From Entomortierella parvispora E1425 (lineage: Eukaryota; Fungi; Mortierellomycota), in assembly GCA_020891255.1 (NCBI GenBank), contig BQFW01000004.1:2108001-2172000 (forward strand): 64,000 bases of DNA, read 5' to 3'. The position numbers and the translations under genes are program-made. A model generated the notes under the pieces. That model did no database searches, was not told the origin of the DNA, and saw only the letters and a list, made by a program, of their open reading frames with translations. This document shows, in pieces, positions 14,165 through 25,100 of this stretch. How positions within the stretch are numbered: position 1 is the first letter of the stretch; each line of letters begins with the position of its first letter.

Positions 14165-15506
14165 ATGCTTATCACCTATTTTCTCTTTCTGCCTCTGGTA
14201 GCCCTGACGTTCCGGACCACCATGACCTCAGGAAACTCGAAAAGGGCGGATACCGTCTATGGTAAGTTTCGTTGAGTGATTAGAACATGAGATATATTAG
14301 GCCGAACAGCTCAACTCGACTACTTTTTTTTACTTTAGTAACAATGACTGAATATCGATACATACCAGTTGCCGTGAATTTGCCAGCGATGATGTCGGGG
14401 TCAGCACCAATCCTTCAGGCGACTCAAGGTACTGTGCTTTATATGACTTAAGAAAAAGTGTGAAGTCGCCCCTACTGTTCTTAACAAATGGAGTGGATCC
14501 TCCTGATCATGTCCTAGGTACCGTCAACAATGTGAATCTGCTGTCCGCTTTCGCCCCGACAAAGGAGTCGATCGCAAACTCAATGCCTGTTCAGCCAGTC
14601 CTGTCGATGAACCGTGGTCCGTTGCCGATCTCACCGTATGAACCTGGATACCACGATGACGAGCAGGTGACACCTAGAGCACCCTATTCAGACTTGATTA
14701 TCTCTGCTAGTGTTGAGTCTGTAGTTCCAAGTCAGGTACCAATACTGATTCCCGCCTCGATAGCAAGTCTTGTTGTAGACAACCCTACTTCATCAGCCTC
14801 AGCCGCAAGTCCAATCCCAATCCAAGTACCAGCTCCTTCTCGAAATGCAAATTCCGCGTCAGAGTTGGTGCCCCCTTCGTTAGCTAATCCAGCTCCTGCA
14901 AATCCTACACAGGCAGCAAGTCCAGTTGCTAGCTCAGCACCAACAAGGCCCATTCAGGCAGCACCACAACCACCACAACCATCATCATCATTATTGCCCG
15001 CACCGATCACTGCATCTGCTACAATTTCAGTTCCCAGTGACACCTCTCTGGCTCCTGCGCTACCTGGACCTCCATCCGAGTACACGTCAACAAACATCCC
15101 GTTTTTGCTTCCCACCAGTCTTCTCTCGACGTGGCCTTCGTTCATGATTTCCTCAGAGGCACCAACAAGTTCTGTGGTTTCTCACACACAAAGTTCAATC
15201 GCCTCAACAACTCTCAGCTTGCACTCGTCTGACAAGACGAGCGTCACGTTGAGCGACACCAGAAAAAAATCTCCCACTACGGCCGAGCCTACGGGCCCTA
15301 CCTCTGCCTCGGAAGATATCACCGAAACATTCACCAGCACCGCGACCATCACGTCGACTGTGGCCGGCGAGGCAACAACGTCACCCACCACCACCTCCTC
15401 CTGCCTCTCAATCCGTGTCCACAAGCAGTTGTCTGCTTTGATATGGTTCCAGGCGTCGATATCCATGTTCCGGTTGATCTACGACTTGAGGATGGTTTTC
15501 GAGTAG
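14165..15506 (+). CDS. Secreted Ser/Thr/Pro-rich mucin-like protein, at least 3 exons
   Basis: Signal-peptide-like MLITYFLFLPLVALTF; GT-AG introns at about 14262-14339 and 14429-14518; long S/T/P-rich exon. The 3' end may be frameshifted (see findings). Confidence 0.65.
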
Positions 15507-15816: not shown

Positions 15817-16258
15817 TTAACGAGCCTTGAGGTTTCCGGCCTTCTTTCTCAATCTCTTGGCCTTGTTGGCAGACATCTTTGCAGCCAAAGCCTCGATTCT
15901 CTCCTTCTCCTCCTGAATCTTTTTCCGCTCTTCCGTGATCTCTCTCTTGCGCTATAGAATAAAACAAAAAAAAGGCATTTAGTTATCAAAGCAGTGTGGA
16001 AAAGGACATTAACCAAGCAGAGAACCTTGGAGGCAAAAGGGGAATACATACACGCTTCTCGTCAATCTTTTCCTGCTTCATGGCCTTGGCCATATCCCTG
16101 GCAATGTTGTGCTGCTTGGTCTTTGCGATACGGGCAGAGTATGTCTGCTTCAAGGCGGTGGGCATCTGGGATCGGCGAGTGGGGGTCTTTGCCATCTTCC
16201 AGTCCTTTCCTGAGACTCTGGTGGCAGGCTCCTGTGGGATGTTCTTCTTGGCGGTCAT
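15817..16258 (-). CDS. CGR1: Cgr1-family coiled-coil rRNA-processing protein; one intron at about 15953-16051
   Basis: RVSGKDWK motif, basic coiled coil, and a spliced exon RKREITEERKKIQEEKERIEALAAKMSANKAKRLRKK. Confidence 0.85.
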
Positions 16259-16973
16259 TGTGATGAGAGAGGACTGATGGAGGTATGATGGGGTGATGAG
16301 ATGCAATGAATGACCAGTCCTTCGATGGGTTCAGCCAGGCAGGGCTTGCAAAAAAAAAAAAAAAAAAAAAAAAATGAAGCTGCGATTTCCTTAAGGGTTC
16401 GCAGCCTTCACAACAAAGCAAATCAAGGGTGAGAAGTCACTTTTTTGCCACCAAGGAGTCCACGCCCCGCTGTCAGGGACTGAGAGCTTGCGGGGACGAC
16501 GACTCGAGGCATCCATGACGCAGTGAAGTAATCATGAGGTGAATGCAAAGAAAGAAGGGTTTTATTTGAGAGACTGTCCGAAGATGTAAGAGTTGCATGG
16601 TTTGTGTACCTGTAAAAAGGAAAAAAAGCAATGCCACGGATGGCAGAACTGGGCAAAGGAGGCAAGCGAGGAAAGGGAAGCGAGGAGGAAGAGGACGAGA
16701 GAGCAAGGACGAGAGGGTGAGACAAAGAGAGACAAAGAGAGAGAGAGAGAGAGGAAGATAGGGAAAGGGCAAGAGAAGAGCCGAGAAGAGCGGGGCGCAA
16801 GGAAGCAAGGAAGCAAAGAAGAGAAGGAGAGGAAGAGAGCACACAAGGAACAAAGAAGCACGCACGCACGCACACACGCGACCGTGGCCCACTCACACCG
16901 CACTGAGTTTATTCAGTTCACACACTCGTTCACCCACCCATTCACACTCGCCCCTTCGCCCAGTCCCAGTCCC

Positions 16974-19900
16974 ACAGTCCAGTCCAGTATCCAGAATTCA
17001 CATTTTTTGGGAACAAGCAATATTCACAGAAATTTATGGTCACGTGTATGTAATTAAGGGCGTACCATAAAGTCCAGGGGGCGGACTTCGAGGTACGATG
17101 AAGCAAATCCATTCTGAAAAAAAATGCAAATCCATTCTGGCCGTTCATCCTGCCAGCCCCCTTTTCTGATAAGACAACAGACCAAGAGTGTATTCAAACT
17201 AGCGCATGAACTTGAGAGACTGCAGTAGTTAAGTAGTCATTACAGAATTAAAGGGATAACAAGTAGAAAGCCAGAATGTTGTTTATTCAATCGCAGCTGC
17301 AGGTTTTTTTTTGATTACTTTTCTGTGGTAAGAACATATACCCCCGGCACGCTCAATTGGTTCCCGAAGACTTTCAAACGCCAATTGTTTTCGCACATCC
17401 AAGTCACGCTCAGCAGGCATCTCATGAATCATACCCAGAACGTGATAGATCACATCCTTGAAGTACTGGTAGTTTTTCCTATTGGAAACTCCAATATTGC
17501 CCCTGCGATATCGCCAATCTTTGCCAAAGGACACATCTAGTTGCCAGATAGGAGGGGTAGCTCCAGAACCTCTGAACCACCGTCGCCATATCTCATCCAA
17601 ATCGACGGGTACGGCGTCTTTTCTGTTCCCATCTCGCGCCAGCACAATATTATCAATATTTGGAGTTATCTGAGGTAGGGTCCATATTCGCTCAGAAAAG
17701 CTTGCTGCAAGCGCCGCAAGGTGACCTTCGAGATTTCCCTCCAATTGACGCTGCTGCTGCTGCTGATCGTGCTCTTGTAAAATTGGCGTTTGCTGTTGCT
17801 GTTGCTGTTGCGGTTGCGGTTGCGGTTGCGGCTGCGGTTGCGGTGGTGGTGGTGGTGGTGGTGTTGTTGTTGCTAGGTGTTGACTTTGTTGTTCTAGATC
17901 AAGATCTTCATCAAGTCTGATCTCGAGTCGCCGTTGCTTTGTTCGTTCCCTACGACGATCTATCAAAGTCTCGTCGTCGTCATCATCAACTTGTTCCTGT
18001 TCGTACTCTTCATCCATGATGGACAATGCATGTGGGGAAGGGGGTAGTGAGCGGATAGGAGGTGTTGACGATGGCACATCCACAACGTCTGGAGCAATAC
18101 GTGCATTTTGATGAGTTGTCTGGTTCCGCTGCGCTACGCGGGCCTCCTCCCGCCGATGTTTTCTTAAATTCTCTGCCATGACCATTCCCGAGACTTCTAA
18201 GCCGAGCTCCATGCTCTCCATGTTTTTTCGCGTTTGTCGAGGTTGAGTAGAGGTGGGATGGATCTGAGGTTCTTGCGGTGTTAAAGATGCAGGCCTTCGG
18301 ACTGCCTGTTGTATTTGCTGGACATGCTGAATGCATTCGATAGGCGCAAAGACTTGAGTGCGCAACGAATTCTCCAGCTCTGAAGCAGTTCTTGCAAGGC
18401 TTATATCATTTGATGCGGATATGCCAGTCATCTGCCTCATTTGTGCTCGAATCTGAAGATCCGCCGCTCGTAACATATCAGAGAGCATTGAGAAGATCCC
18501 CATTGTGGCGTGTTGGTTTAATTCTCGATGCTGCTTTGCAAGTGAATCCATGACGTTCACGTTCAATTCGCGAGATGTTGCTGCCTCGTCCCTTAGAATC
18601 TTGGGGAGACCTTCAGTGATCGCCTTTAGTTTGTCCAATTTCGACTCCACAACTTGATTGTGATGATGAAGACCCGGTAAATTGGCCTTGATACTATCTG
18701 ACAGAGGCGAGACAGATGTTTCCATGGATTCGATCAGGTTTTTCTGAAATTCTAGGAACTCGATTGATTTGAAAAGATCGATGTCGAAGATCTCATGTCG
18801 ATGGTAGGGGCGATCTGGGATTGAGAGAGACATCAAGGCGACTGCGTCCTGCAGCACAACTTTGCGGAGGTGGGCGAGAAGAAGAAGAAACCGTATGAGC
18901 CTAATGTCCCTCTTCTCTATAGGCATGCGACGATCGACTGGTCGATTCAAATACATATCTCGATCCATCATGACGTTTTCGACCCATACTGTCCAGTCGG
19001 GGTACGTGAAGCATGTCTCTATGAACGGAAAGACTTTTCGCTGCAAGTTGGCGTCTGGAGTAAGAGTGTTCCGAGCTAACCAAAGGCGTTCTCCAGGCAA
19101 AGTACAACCAGCCAGTTTCATAGGAACATCCTTAGGGAAACTGCTGAGGTAGTGAGTGACGACTCGCCTTCCTGTCTGCCAACGACCATGCTGAGAAATT
19201 GCTTCGATATCAGCTCCTGCTTCCTGTGCATGCCGTGCTCCTGATCCACGATGCCCGTGCAGTGGTTTGCTAGTTTTCACTCCAATGCTATCCAGCCCTG
19301 ACTTGCCGGCCGCGCGGTGGGTGGAATCATGCATCTGTTTTTCTTTCGTCATTTCCAACAAGCAGAAAAATGTCGACCCAGGAGTTATCTGCGGGGTCAA
19401 ACTTTTTAAGCTGAAGTGGAAAAAAAATGGGATAAAGTCACTCAGTTAATTGTATGGCCTTCAACATATCAACAAAAACATATGGCACCAATATTTAATG
19501 GCTATTACCAAGAAACGTTCGAGAAGATGAAGCGCCAGGCTGCCAACAGGACATATCTGAACATCCTTGTTCCTGACAACGCTTCCATAGGCCGCCTTTC
19601 CATCTCGATTCGTCTTTCCTCGCAACATTTGAAGGATAACTCCCAAAGTGAACTGGTGACCATCCTTCGGATGTTCATATGCATGAGAGAATATGTCAGA
19701 CAACCTGGCCATACGCAAGTTTTCGCCTCGAGACATCATGAAGTGCAGCCAGGATCCACTAAGACGACTTCGAAATCCGACGATCTTCTTTCTCTTTGTT
19801 CTTCCGTGGTATCTGTGTTGCCAGCCATCCCACATTAAGGCAGACAACTCTGGTATATCATATCCACTGTCAAAGTTGAGAGTCGCTGTGTCTTCTGAGG

Positions 19901-21803
19901 TGAGTTGGGCGGAATACTCCAGAACATATCCCTTCATGAGTGAAGACAGCTCTGGAGATCGTAAACTGATCGTAGGATGCCCAAACATAACCTTGTTGCT
20001 CGGATCTGCCTTTTGCATCTTAAAAAAGATCGAAGCAGGCTTTGACGTATTGCATGACTGTTTCTGGAGCCGGCAGTTGGCCGTCAGGATCATAGCCATC
20101 CTTTGTTTTGCTGACTCGTAGAGGGCGAATCCCTTTTGGCAGCTCAGGGTCGACAGGGTGTTTGGCGACGTTGTGGGTCATGTAAAGGAGGAAGCGACTG
20201 GGAAGTACATTGGGTTTGACATAGCCCATTCGTTTGCACCAGGCCTATTGTCATGGGAGGTAATGGATTACTCTGTTATGGTCAATAACGTTTGAAAATG
20301 ATGAGCCAGTCAACTGTAGCAGCAGCATTCTATTACCACCCAGTGCCTCTGATAGCGGCCATATGTTGCCTGGGTACTCTTGGCCTGTTGTTGTTTGCCT
20401 TGGCGAGCAGCTTGCTGCAGTGCGGAGATCTCCATGTCTGCGAGTTGTTGGTCGAAGTCTTGATCGTCTAAATAATCTCGACGAGCGGCAACGTCCTCTG
20501 TTCCTTGCATGAGTGGGTCATCACTAGCATCCAGCTCTTGATCGGCGATAAACTGAACAGGTCCATCATCAACCTCCAACTGGGCCCGCTCCTCGTCCTC
20601 CGCTCTTTCACGGTCAATTTCTTGCTGGGACCGCATGATTTCTTCTGGCAATGATTCTCGGGAGGACTGAGTCAGCTTGGCCACAGCCAAACGCTTTTTG
20701 GTCTCCATCTTCCTCAATTCCCTAGTCTGGTCATCTTCCTCGTCATATTCCGAGTCAGAGGATCCATCGCTCTCGTAGTCACTGCCATGGGCCTCGGATG
20801 TCCTCAAATCCAACTCCCCCTGTGAATACACAAGCTCTGCTCCACCAAAGATATCATCCATGCAGTCTCGGTGAGGTCTCTGCGTCATATGCGCTTTTGG
20901 TAACCGCGAGCTAGCTTCTCCTTCCGACAGATCGCTAGAGTCTTGTGGGATAGCACGCTCTTTCCCCTTGGAGGCGCTATATGACAGGTCTCTGTCATTA
21001 TTTTGCTGATTTCTGGGGCCACGTTTCTTGCCTTTGTCGCTCCTGGATTTTCTCTTTTGAGGAACAGCATTGCTTGCACTCGAACCAGCTTGCGCTCTTT
21101 CGTTTTGGTTCTCGTTCATTTCACCCTGTTCAGATAGTGGTAATGCATATGCTGATGAAGATGACCCTGAGGAGCTAGATCCCGAAGTCGCATGAACTTC
21201 ATTAGACACCAAAGAAAGCGAATGAACATCCAATCCTTCTTTCGCTATGCAGCCATGTTTTCCATGCTAAAGCAGACAGTGCGACAATGTGCAAACATAC
21301 CCAGCGCATGAAGAGCAGTTGTTGTCGCATTGAAGTCTACATTGGGTTGGGTTGTCCTTGCCGCCCAATGGCTCTGGGAACTGAACATGCAATCTTCCCT
21401 CGTTTGGAGATGAAACGTTGGCTAATGGTTGTCCAGCGTGGGAAAAAATAGTGAGCAGTCGGTAGGGATAGTTTGGCGAAGGAGGGGGAAGAAAGGAAAG
21501 AAACGAGGCGCTCTGGATCTTGAGAATTAGAGTGAGTAAGAAGGAAGGGTGTTAAGAATGGTTGAATGGTTCGCGGAAAGCATGCAGCGTGCAATGCAGT
21601 CGCGCCACCAACTCCAACATAAAAAGCCCAGCCCAAAACCCCTTAAAAGACTTAACTACCCTGTCCCTCGCCCCGATGCGATTTTCGCCTTCACGGTGTT
21701 CACGCACAGAGTGACTTTTCTTAGTTTTTTTTTACTTTAAGCCACCAATTGAATTGACCTTGTGAAACTGTGTTCACGTTAGACCAATACAGTCCAGTCC
21801 AGT
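16974..21803 (-). mobile_element. CryptonF-type tyrosine-recombinase DNA transposon (putative extent)
   Basis: Encodes a YR (Ndc10-II-like) domain plus a C-terminal GCR1_C-like domain; delimited by identical 15-bp direct repeats ACAGTCCAGTCCAGT. The boundaries are inferred. Confidence 0.75.
17283..21388 (-). pseudogene. Crypton tyrosine recombinase + GCR1_C gene with 3 introns and two +1 frameshifts (at about 20022-20027 and 19338-19342)
   Basis: SRGENLR (R), GKTN (K), HGHR (HxxR), GRW (W) and VVTHYL (Y) catalytic motifs; WVDIFLLVG motif; C-terminal DLDEIWRRWFRG...PPIWQLDVSFGKDWR; introns at about 21250-21300, 20247-20336 and 19411-19508. Confidence 0.85.
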
Positions 21804-22107
21804 CCAGCCCAGTCAGCCCGCCCTCACGCTCTCCATCTCAATTCCAGAATATAATATTGTCTGTCCTATTGCTATCGCATCGAATCGATCCCCAATCAAT
21901 CAAGCGTCCTCTGGATCCCCTCCTTTCTCCCCCGCCCCCTCGCTGTCATCTCTGATCCTTACATCGACTGACCGGATCCTGCCTCCGTCCATCATCACCT
22001 TTGCCTCCCTACTTCACTCTTTGCCGGCCAGGGAACGTTCTACCCGCCTGCTGCTGAAAGACACATCGACCGCACTGCATTCCTAGCTGCTGTGCATCTG
22101 GCCAATC

Positions 22108-25100
22108 ATGGATCCCAACGTGAAGATGCGCGTCAAGGTCTACAAGCTCAGTGCCGGCAATCAATGGATCGATCAGGGCACAGGACATTGTTCCTGCGAG
22201 TTCAACGCGGTAAGCACCTTCTTACTGCCACTGAAATCAACATCAGTTACCATGGAACGAAACTGCACATGCATGGACCCCGACCCTTTTGGCGCAGCCC
22301 TTGGAGCCGACGGCACGCAACAAATAAACGACCCGAGTGGCCAATCGGGACCTGGTGGGGTGCACATTCCCATGTTGTTGCATCCAATATCCGTCGAGCT
22401 TGGCTTCTCGTCGACTTTTTTCAACTAGGAAACAGGATGAATGACACGCGCGTCCAGGATATGTAGGCGCACACACCGTCAAACTTTCGGGAGACACGCG
22501 ACAACTGCCCGCCGATACCGCATATTGACTGTGGAAGTGGGTTATCAACCCGTCAACTGACCGCGGTACCCTTTCTTGCCTTCTAACAGGATAAATCAGA
22601 GGGGACATTGATTGTACGTTCTGAAGATGACGAGGATGTAGTTCTTCTCAGCTCCCGGATAAGAGTCGGTGAAGACCTCTACCAGCGACAGCAAGGTGCG
22701 CAACTATCAAATGAATTCATGAATGCCACGGGGGTTTTCCCCTTTCCAGCCACCATTGACATGATGACCTTTCCTCTGTACTTTACCTTTAGAAACGTTG
22801 ATCGTTTGGTCAGAGAACGAGGGAGTCGATCTTGCGCTGAGCTTCCAGGAGGCTGAAGGCTGTGGAGAAATCTGGTAGGATACTGGAGAAGTGACAGTTT
22901 GGCTAAGGGGCTAAGGATGCGGCGCATGTATTGCCTTGGGACTGACTAGATGCAAACATATTACTTTCATTGACATAGGGATAATATCAACGAAGTTCAA
23001 CAGCACTATGGTATGTCCTACCAGCTCAGTGCAGTAGAGAGCATGGATGTGTATATTCTAACGTTTACATTCTCAAATAGCTGAAGATCTATTCTCTGAC
23101 CCCTCAGACGCAAATGGCGCCGGAGGCGCAGAATATCTTTCTCTGCCGGATCCCGATATCTCCAACTTAGATGAGATCGAGATTATGGTCAGGGGAGCAC
23201 TTATCGGGATGAACGAAAAAGAGAAACTGGCAGGCTTTATCATCATGGATGTACGTTATTATCACGGAGTGGCGCGTGTGCAGGTGTTGAAGAGTCCGAG
23301 ACTGAGGAGCTAACACGTGTCATACAATTTCTTTTAGAACTACATTGACAAATTGTTGCCAGTGTTGGACACCTGTGAAGATCTTGAAAGCATTGCAGAC
23401 CTGCACCACTTGCATGGGATAATTACCGGAATTAGTATGTATTCACAACACAAGGTTATCCGAGACAGCGTTGATTTGATCCAAAGTACTCATCGGTCTT
23501 TTTTTTTTTTTTTTTTTTGCATAGTCATGTTGAACGATATTGCAGTTATTCAGCATATTCTCAAAGACGAGATCATTATTGGCTGCCTTGGGATGCTGGA
23601 ATGTATGACATACCGCGATGAAAGTTCTAGTGTCAAGGTGCCGTATTAATGACAATACAATTCTCTTGTAGATGATCCTGAGCTCGGGAACGAAAAAGAA
23701 GACTACAGGGATTTTATCTCAAAACGGTCTAAATTCAAGCAGATTGTCCCTATTAATGACCCTGAAGTCGAGCAAAAGATTCATCAGGCTTACCGACTTC
23801 AGTACCTACGGGATACTGTTCTTGTTCGAATCATGGACGAGGGTCTGTCGTCCATCCTGAGCTCCCTTATTTTCTTCCACAACATCGATATTGTTAATTA
23901 TATTCACCAAGATCGGGGATTTTTGAAACAACTCTTTGGGATACTGGAGGACGAAGCCGAAAGTATGGAGAGGAAGCGAGACGTTATCCGGTTTGTGCAG
24001 CAGTTCTGTACCATCGCAAAGACAACTCAAATGCCGGCACGAGTGGGCCTCTACCGGTATGAAGCTCATCCTGCTTTTCTGGTGTTACCTTGAGTCTGTT
24101 TACCAAGACTCACCTTTCCTACCGCTCTTCATTTCTGTTGTAGGACTTTGAGCCAAACCGGGCTTTTCAACGTGTTTGAGCTTGCATTGTCGGATTCAGA
24201 GCCAAGCATTAGGATGGCCGGAACAGAGATTTTTCTCTCTGCCATGGAGCATGACCCGAACCTTGTGCGATCCTACATTGTAAAGCAGTCGGAGGAGCAA
24301 ACACCAAAGCAGCTTATGAACATTATTTTGTACCAGTTTTTGATCGAGCAGGATATGGGCATCAAACTGCAGTACTCAGAGGTCATTCGCATGTTGCTGG
24401 ATACAAACACGAGCCAATGTGAGAACGGGATGCCTGCCGCGCTAGACGCTATACCACATCTAGACCCCGACGCGGACAAGTTCTTGGATTTGTTTTACGC
24501 CTCCCATATCAGCAAATTCGTCTCCCCGCTCTTGGAGCTCTCCAATGGTATATGACAGAACACTTGCATGACCGATGCCTTGAAATGTAGTCTGATGACT
24601 CACATCCCGCTTTTTCTATAATAGATATGACAACTCTTGAGCGGTCGCTGGCTTCAGTTTGTGAAAATGCTTGCCAGATTTTGTCTTTCATGGTCAGAAA
24701 CCACTCATTTCGGAGCAAATACTACGTGCTCTCCAGTGGTATTGTCGACAAGATCTCACTGTTGCTGAGGAACCGCGACCAGCATCTCCGACTATGTAAG
24801 CGCTTTCGACTGATTTGTGCCTTGAGAAAAAAAGAAGAGCCGACAGTAAAACCCATAGGCATCTATCCCACATCGAACCTATTTTGACTCTTTTTTTTTG
24901 ATGATAGCCGCCCTTCGCTTTTTCCGTACCTGTATTGGACTCAATGATGAGTTTTACCACCGATACCTGATAAAACATAATGTGGTGCAGCACATCGTTG
25001 ACGCATTGCTCTCTACTGGCAACAAGAACAATCTGCTGAACTCGGCCTGTATCGAATTCTTCGATTTCATCCGGAGTGTAAGTGACAAATAAGTGAGGAG

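Follow-up and report, generated by a model that had tools for sequence, protein, structure and literature searches.

Between CGR1 and PSY2, two head-to-head housekeeping genes of the fungus Entomortierella parvispora E1425, lies a 4.8-kb element that encodes a spliced tyrosine recombinase on the minus strand. The locus falls within a 64,000-nucleotide stretch of contig BQFW01000004.1 (positions 2,108,001 to 2,172,000 of the forward strand), here called the window, whose numbering is used throughout. A first-pass annotation made from the sequence alone had described a Crypton element and had left open whether it is a mobile copy or a domesticated gene. With a probability of about 90%, we conclude that a young CryptonF DNA transposon of the autonomous type, hosted by a Mortierellaceae fungus, has one of its copies at positions 16985-21793. 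The element between CGR1 and PSY2 is a recent insertion of a known transposon type, neither a tamed gene nor a new kind of element, and the copies in this genome form a new family of that known kind. CryptonF elements are defined by a tyrosine recombinase combined with a GCR1_C domain, and Cryptons carry direct repeats of 4 or 6 bp at their termini, regarded as recombination substrates, without inverted or long repeats (PMC3212892; PMC13465315).

The mobility of the element is reflected first in its copies. A DNA search of the 38.9-Mb, 20-contig genome, with positions 16974-21803 as the query, returned eight copies at 99.2-100% identity on seven contigs (seven full-length and one end-truncated); the first-pass annotation had proposed such a count. 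Substitutions between copies amount to at most five per 4.8 kb. When the copies were aligned together with their flanks, similarity began and ended at identical bases, and the flanks were completely unrelated. At its left end the element has the sequence CAGTATCCAGAATTC, at its right end GACCAATACAGT; both termini are short identical repeats of CAGT, and neither inverted repeats of the termini nor split or long direct repeats were found in the element. Searching the genome for the end patterns located exactly seven left ends and eight right ends, and therefore no deletion derivatives. The truncated copy (L008) lacks 232 bp at its left end; a nested insertion was considered as the origin of this end and was rejected, as the unique left flank shows a plain deletion. 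An element does lie where the first-pass annotation had placed it, at 16974-21803, while its true ends, 16985 and 21793, are about 10 bp further in on each side. The earlier ends were drawn too far out because a host CCAGT/CCCAGT-like tract mimics the CAGT ends.

Two further features of the termini were noted. The two bases 3′ of the right CAGT are always A or C followed by C or T, in a sample (n = 8 copies) too small to speak of a preference. Six occurrences of the pentamer TTCAC/GTGAA fall within 124 nt of the ends, where the rest of the element would lead one to expect 0.49. These pentamers, a motif chosen after seeing the data, may be candidate recombinase-binding sites.

The second indication of mobility comes from the insertion site. 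The start codon of CGR1 lies at 16258, separated from the element by 726 bp, and that of PSY2 lies at 22108, with 314 bp of native upstream DNA left before the element. The distance between the two start codons is 5,849 bp, or 1,044 bp without the element. The first-pass annotation had proposed a search for an empty site in relatives, and such sites were found: in two metagenome contigs of Mortierellaceae-like type, the two genes also stand head to head, with spacers of 458 bp (L012) and 392 bp (L013) and no element. Their CGR1 sequences are 84% and 78% identical, and the PSY2 N-terminus is the same in both as in the window. Because the two genes stand head to head in both related contigs, the arrangement is ancestral and the element was inserted in the spacer.

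We treated the element gene exon by exon and took the length of the product as the sum of the exon lengths. Four long open pieces were read on the minus strand, from about 17.3 to 21.1 kb. With 261 codons for exon 1 and the 245 and 708 codons of exon 2/3 and exon 4 in copy L004, the product would have roughly 1,214 residues. The gene points in the same direction as CGR1 and fills about 3.84 of the 4.81 kb. Exon 1 is acidic and Ser-rich, ends in YGRYQRHWV and is open in all eight copies; no Pfam family reaches threshold within it. The exon 1/2 junction matches the continuous YQRYQRHWMEWCIRKGY of P0008, a relative from Dissophora ornata. Exon 2/3 is a single open frame of 245 codons in L002, L004, L005 and L008, and exon 4, which includes a long, low-complexity linker with a poly-Pro/Gln run, is a single open frame of 708 codons in L004. 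Both introns start with GTAATAG, and intron 2 splits the recombinase domain between the catalytic Lys and the HxxR motif, with coverage of the Pfam profile NDC10_II resuming over the intron (from profile position 113 to 131). The spliced minus-strand gene of the first-pass annotation is only part of the account, as the two introns are real but splicing alone leaves the window copy discontinuous, with two frameshifts.

The recombinase assignment was borne out. All of the catalytic motifs named earlier are present on the minus strand of the window, SRGENLR and GKTN in the open reading frame (ORF) at 19461-20099 and HGHR, GRW and THY in the ORF at 17283-19400; in the window copy, these residues sit in frames broken by the two frameshifts. 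NDC10_II scores 31.9 and 26.9 bits on the two pieces of the window copy, both above the cut-off of 26.3; on L004, which is free of frameshifts, the scores are 29.6 and 32.2 bits. In L004, the match to exon 2/3 covers profile positions 38-113 (E = 4.7e-7) and that to exon 4 covers positions 131-314 (E = 7.6e-8), and the two matches together make up one complete domain split by intron 2. The catalytic residues are strongly conserved: Arg172 and Lys210, together with Arg177 and Gly209, at 90% or more in an alignment of exon 2/3 with 19 relatives, and His51, Arg54 and Tyr87 at 90% or more, with Trp77 invariant, in an alignment of exon 4 with nine relatives. A profile built from the relatives of exon 2/3 matches yeast Ndc10 structures (E = 7.7e-11); a direct sequence search of both exon pieces against the Protein Data Bank (PDB) gave nothing relevant. 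In the second half, the spacing is 26 residues from His to Trp and 10 from Trp to Tyr in the element (9 in most relatives). In Cre, these distances are 26 and 9 residues.

The GCR1_C-like C-terminus, which had been cited as the CryptonF architecture, is supported through a relative, the direct Pfam score being weak. The last 129 residues of the product align to residues 409-528 of P0001 (E = 2e-12), which has its own GCR1_C match at residues 426-482 (29.1 bits, above threshold), placing GCR1_C and the recombinase in the same protein. Among 20 relatives, NDC10_II is found in 18 and GCR1_C in five (best E = 5.7e-25). Elsewhere in the genome, a 242-bp stretch (C15:271286-271527) shows 73% DNA identity to the GCR1_C-coding part and is probably a related, older family or a fragment. 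The coordinates of all features are collected in Table 1.

Table 1. Features of the element, its gene and its surroundings, in window coordinates.
Feature	Position	Strand	Remarks
Whole Crypton element	16985..21793	-	4,809 bp including both CAGT; bounds common to the 7 full-length copies
Left terminal CAGT	16985..16988		Putative crossover core or short direct repeat; in 7/7 full-length copies
Right terminal CAGT	21790..21793		In 8/8 copies
TTCAC/GTGAA cluster	16989-17108 and 21674-21789	either strand counted	Picked post hoc
Exon 1	20337..21119	-	261 codons, from first in-frame ATG; start codon inferred
Intron 1	20245..20336	-	92 nt, GTAATAG...CAATAG; read from sequence; frame and protein continuity agree with P0008
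Exon 2/3	19509..20244	-	N-terminal core-binding-like region and first half of recombinase domain; NDC10_II profile positions 38-113/116
Intron 2	19411..19508	-	98 nt, GTAATAG...CTTCAG; read from sequence
Exon 4 including stop codon	17283..19410	-	Second recombinase half, linker, GCR1_C-like C-terminus
T6 run (sense)	20022..20027	-	+1 frameshift; T5 in L002, L004, L005, L008
A5 run (sense)	19338..19342	-	+1 frameshift; A4 in L003, L004, L006, L008
Arg-I, R of SRGEN (R172)	19730-19728	-	Exon 2/3
Lys, K of GKTN (K210)	19616-19614	-	Exon 2/3
H51-x-x-R54	19259-19248	-	Exon 4 numbering
W77	19181-19179	-	Exon 4 numbering
Y87	19151-19149	-	Exon 4 numbering
GCR1_C-like DNA-binding domain	17448..17597	-	Pfam GCR1_C 18.9 bits
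Host CCAGT/CCCAGT-like tract, left target half	16959..16984		Runs seamlessly into 21794-21819 once the element is removed
Host CCAGT-like tract, right target half	21794..21819
CGR1 exon 1	16052..16258	-	Pfam Cgr1 38.4 bits; 91-94% identical to Mortierellaceae CGR1
PSY2/PP4R3 exon 1	22108..22203	+	EVH1_PP4R3 E 4e-4

Several results weigh against reading the element as a young and autonomous-type CryptonF. As assembled, six of the seven full-length copies carry at least one frameshift, and the window copy carries two. With 18.9 bits, the direct GCR1_C match falls short of the Pfam cut-off (23). The exon 4 profile reaches Cre at E = 0.56 and the integron integrase IntI4 at E = 0.11, neither of which is significant, although these weak matches do cover the HxxR...W...Y region (Cre 288-330, IntI4 239-313). 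AlphaFold, run on exon 4 residues 1-230 with a 10-sequence alignment, yielded a model whose catalytic half (residues 15-113) has a predicted local distance difference test score (pLDDT) below 50, and a Foldseek search of the half-domain model against the PDB returned no match at E <= 0.001; the poor model is likely due to the domain being cut by intron 2. The two empty-site contigs belong to other species and not to a sister strain, so they set no date for the insertion. Finally, it is from the identity of the copies that present activity is deduced, because no excision or integration event was seen and the assembly contains no circle junction or tandem copy.

The T6 and A5 runs are frameshifts and not introns, because relatives are continuous at both points (P0028 in the case of T6). 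Programmed frameshifting at the two homopolymers was considered and rejected, as the run lengths differ between the DNA copies. All three exons are open as assembled only in L004 among the seven full-length copies, and in the truncated L008. With its two frameshifts, the window copy as assembled holds no intact gene. Copies also vary at a single-nucleotide polymorphism (SNP) at 20833 and in the length of the proline-run microsatellite, and these two characters divide them into two sub-lineages. The microsatellite is a trinucleotide run encoding poly-Pro/Gln in exon 4 (17786-17845, minus strand); its length differs between copies but always in frame, with 21-33 extra bases in L005, L006, L007 and L008. 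Within each of the two sub-lineages, the two frameshift indels occur in all four combinations, and the four-gamete test fails. Noise in the base calling or polishing of homopolymers, or gene conversion, accounts for this pattern better than inherited mutations do, and the frameshifts of the window copy may be assembly noise.

The alternative that survives best is that the family is extinct, all copies being inactive relics and the open L004 a chance survivor or an assembly artefact. The prevalence of frameshifts among the full-length copies and the lack of a circle junction in the assembly speak for extinction. We nevertheless regard it as unlikely, since relics would have to be reconciled with so few substitutions between copies, with frameshifts confined to homopolymers of 5-6 nt, and with the four-gamete failure in both sub-lineages, which fits base-calling noise better than inherited mutations.

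It is very improbable that segmental duplication or gene conversion, and not transposition, multiplied the 4.8-kb block. In favor of such an origin are the high identity between copies and the mosaic of homopolymer and SNP states over the copies, which could stem from gene conversion. Set against this origin are the identical end bases, the CAGT on both sides and the unrelated flanks on seven contigs, together with the fact that the block encodes a recombinase of a known transposon family.

Even less credit is due to the domesticated gene that the first-pass annotation had kept in play, namely a host gene of Crypton descent, comparable to Ndc10, Gcr1, Msn1 or Hot1, whose place between CGR1 and PSY2 would be accidental. 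Domain homology to Ndc10 and GCR1_C and the host-like introns speak for such a gene. A domesticated gene should be single-copy and syntenic and should lack transposon ends; here, the near-identical copies sit at unrelated loci, their identity takes in about 0.97 kb of non-coding terminal sequence, two relatives lack the element in their CGR1-PSY2 spacer, and the window copy is frameshifted. We therefore reject domestication, a single-copy gene in particular being ruled out by the eight copies, the unrelated flanks and the CAGT at both ends. A DIRS/Ngaro retroelement, which would also bring a tyrosine recombinase, or a DDE transposon with a fixed 4-bp target duplication, which the repeat at both ends can resemble, has next to no chance of being correct, given that no reverse transcriptase or RNase H was matched (ORF list, Pfam), that one gene fills the element, that both introns are kept in every copy of the alignment, that neither terminal inverted or split direct repeats nor a DDE domain was found in the element, and that the flanking repeat is always CAGT, as expected of a recombination core and not of a staggered cut at varied sites. 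With its introns retained and no room for a reverse transcriptase, the element is DNA-based and no retroelement.

For the CryptonF transposon that we favor, the following course can be proposed. The product would consist of a disordered N-terminal region, an Ndc10/Crypton-type recombinase bearing the R-K-HxxR-W-Y residues and, at the C-terminus, a GCR1_C DNA-binding domain. If the element follows the model accepted for Cryptons, its recombinase would cut it out as a circle closed at the 4-bp CAGT core, and a crossover with a genomic CAGT would insert this circle again. Such a course would leave CAGT on either side of the element, and neither inverted repeats nor a variable target duplication. 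This family model goes back to Goodwin et al. 2003, as cited in PMC3212892. The window copy would have integrated at a CAGT in the CCAGT-like tract of the short head-to-head CGR1-PSY2 spacer. Being frameshifted, it would depend on recombinase made by a different copy, L004 for example, unless the frameshifts are errors of the assembly.

The surroundings of the insertion agree with the first-pass annotation in their strand-biased composition, purine-rich on the CGR1 side and C-rich on the PSY2 side. The plus strand is purine-rich over 16250-16999 (AT skew up to +0.49) and C-rich over 21500-22249 (GC skew about -0.27). The element would have moved PSY2 about 4.8 kb away from the shared promoter, as had been suggested. 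Of the two neighbors, PSY2 has PP4R3 domains downstream of its exon 1 (E = 1e-28 and 6e-23), and the CGR1 exon shares 94% identity with a Logan-assembly protein and 91% with that of Gryganskiella cystojenkinii, all other named-source matches coming from Mortierellaceae. About 90 bp upstream of the CGR1 start codon, the plus strand carries a run of about 25 A (16349-16373; T on the CGR1 sense strand), which adjoins a long CT-rich tract at 16.6-16.9 kb. Downstream of CGR1, a 348-codon open frame on the plus strand (14460-15506) is very rich in Ser, Thr and Pro and has no Pfam match; it could be an exon of a mucin-like or cell-wall protein, or non-coding low-complexity DNA.

More tentatively, and with the odds somewhat against it as a whole, the family may still be transposing with an L004-type recombinase, and the CGR1-PSY2 insertion may be strain-specific, splitting a conserved bidirectional promoter and altering the expression of one or both genes. 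If the family is still transposing, the CAGT core and the end-clustered TTCAC pentamers would mark the recombination site, and the fungus, being culturable, would offer a tractable system for experimental Crypton transposition. Among eukaryotic DNA transposons, Cryptons form a small class with a mechanism that has been studied too little; the circle-and-crossover scheme proposed for it rests largely on sequence inference. Seven near-identical full-length copies, exactly bounded and sharing an unvarying 4-bp core, at least one of them open, are good material for tests of mechanism, and the insertion in a conserved head-to-head promoter gives a clean natural setting in which to ask what such insertions do to neighboring genes. 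Beyond these two uses, it is an ordinary transposon insertion of modest interest.

The element is not an isolated case in its genome or its kind. At least 30 further, much more distant matches to the recombinase half-domain occur in the genome at 28-50% identity, including an apparent separate four-copy family; among them are C1:1931737, C10:676642, C13:2315469, C8:2274653, C8:2278802, C12:209544 and C7:882218. The genome carries several Crypton families. One copy of the present family (L003) adjoins, on its right flank, a piggyBac-like transposase frame of at least 500 codons (L003:6310-7809, contig C6; DDE_Tnp_1_7, E = 5e-57), which is open for 17 codons over the reconstructed empty site, and this copy may be nested in, or lie just before, the gene of another transposon. 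In protein searches with E <= 0.001 as the limit, exon 2/3 matched 403 representatives, of which the best has 70% identity and comes from a single-member cluster, and every named source among the best exon 4 matches is from Mortierellomycota (43-57% identity). The kind is therefore common, but the element's own family is absent from the public protein sets searched. A literature search for Cryptons in Mortierella or Mortierellomycota gave only irrelevant results; Rhizopus oryzae ('Zygomycota') is listed among Crypton hosts (PMC3212892).

Among known systems, tyrosine recombinases of the Cre, lambda-integrase and integron-integrase type offer a comparison through Cre, which matches the element in the order and spacing of HxxR, Trp and Tyr, whereas the profile matches to Cre and IntI4 are not significant and no loxP-like inverted-repeat recombination site is evident around the CAGT. 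A further system is Ndc10/Cbf2, the yeast CBF3 kinetochore subunit (PDB 4aco, 6gyp and others), which shares a homologous NDC10_II recombinase fold and a weakly similar GCR1_C-like stretch at its C-terminus. In Ndc10, a host gene present as a single copy, the catalytic site has not been retained (PMC3212892), whereas the element keeps its catalytic residues, is multi-copy and has transposon ends. The closest likeness is to CryptonF itself, represented by Crypton-Cn1 from Cryptococcus neoformans and by further Cryptons of fungi and oomycetes. These elements have the same single gene, a tyrosine recombinase with a C-terminal GCR1_C, and are likewise a few kb long and multi-copy, with short identical direct repeats at their ends and no inverted or long repeats. 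The element differs from them as a separate family by sequence, its best public proteins reaching the 70% (exon 2/3) and 57% (exon 4) given above, in its host, a Mortierellaceae fungus, and in its terminal repeat, which is the 4-bp CAGT here and 6 bp in most fungal CryptonF (Kojima & Jurka 2011, PMC3212892).

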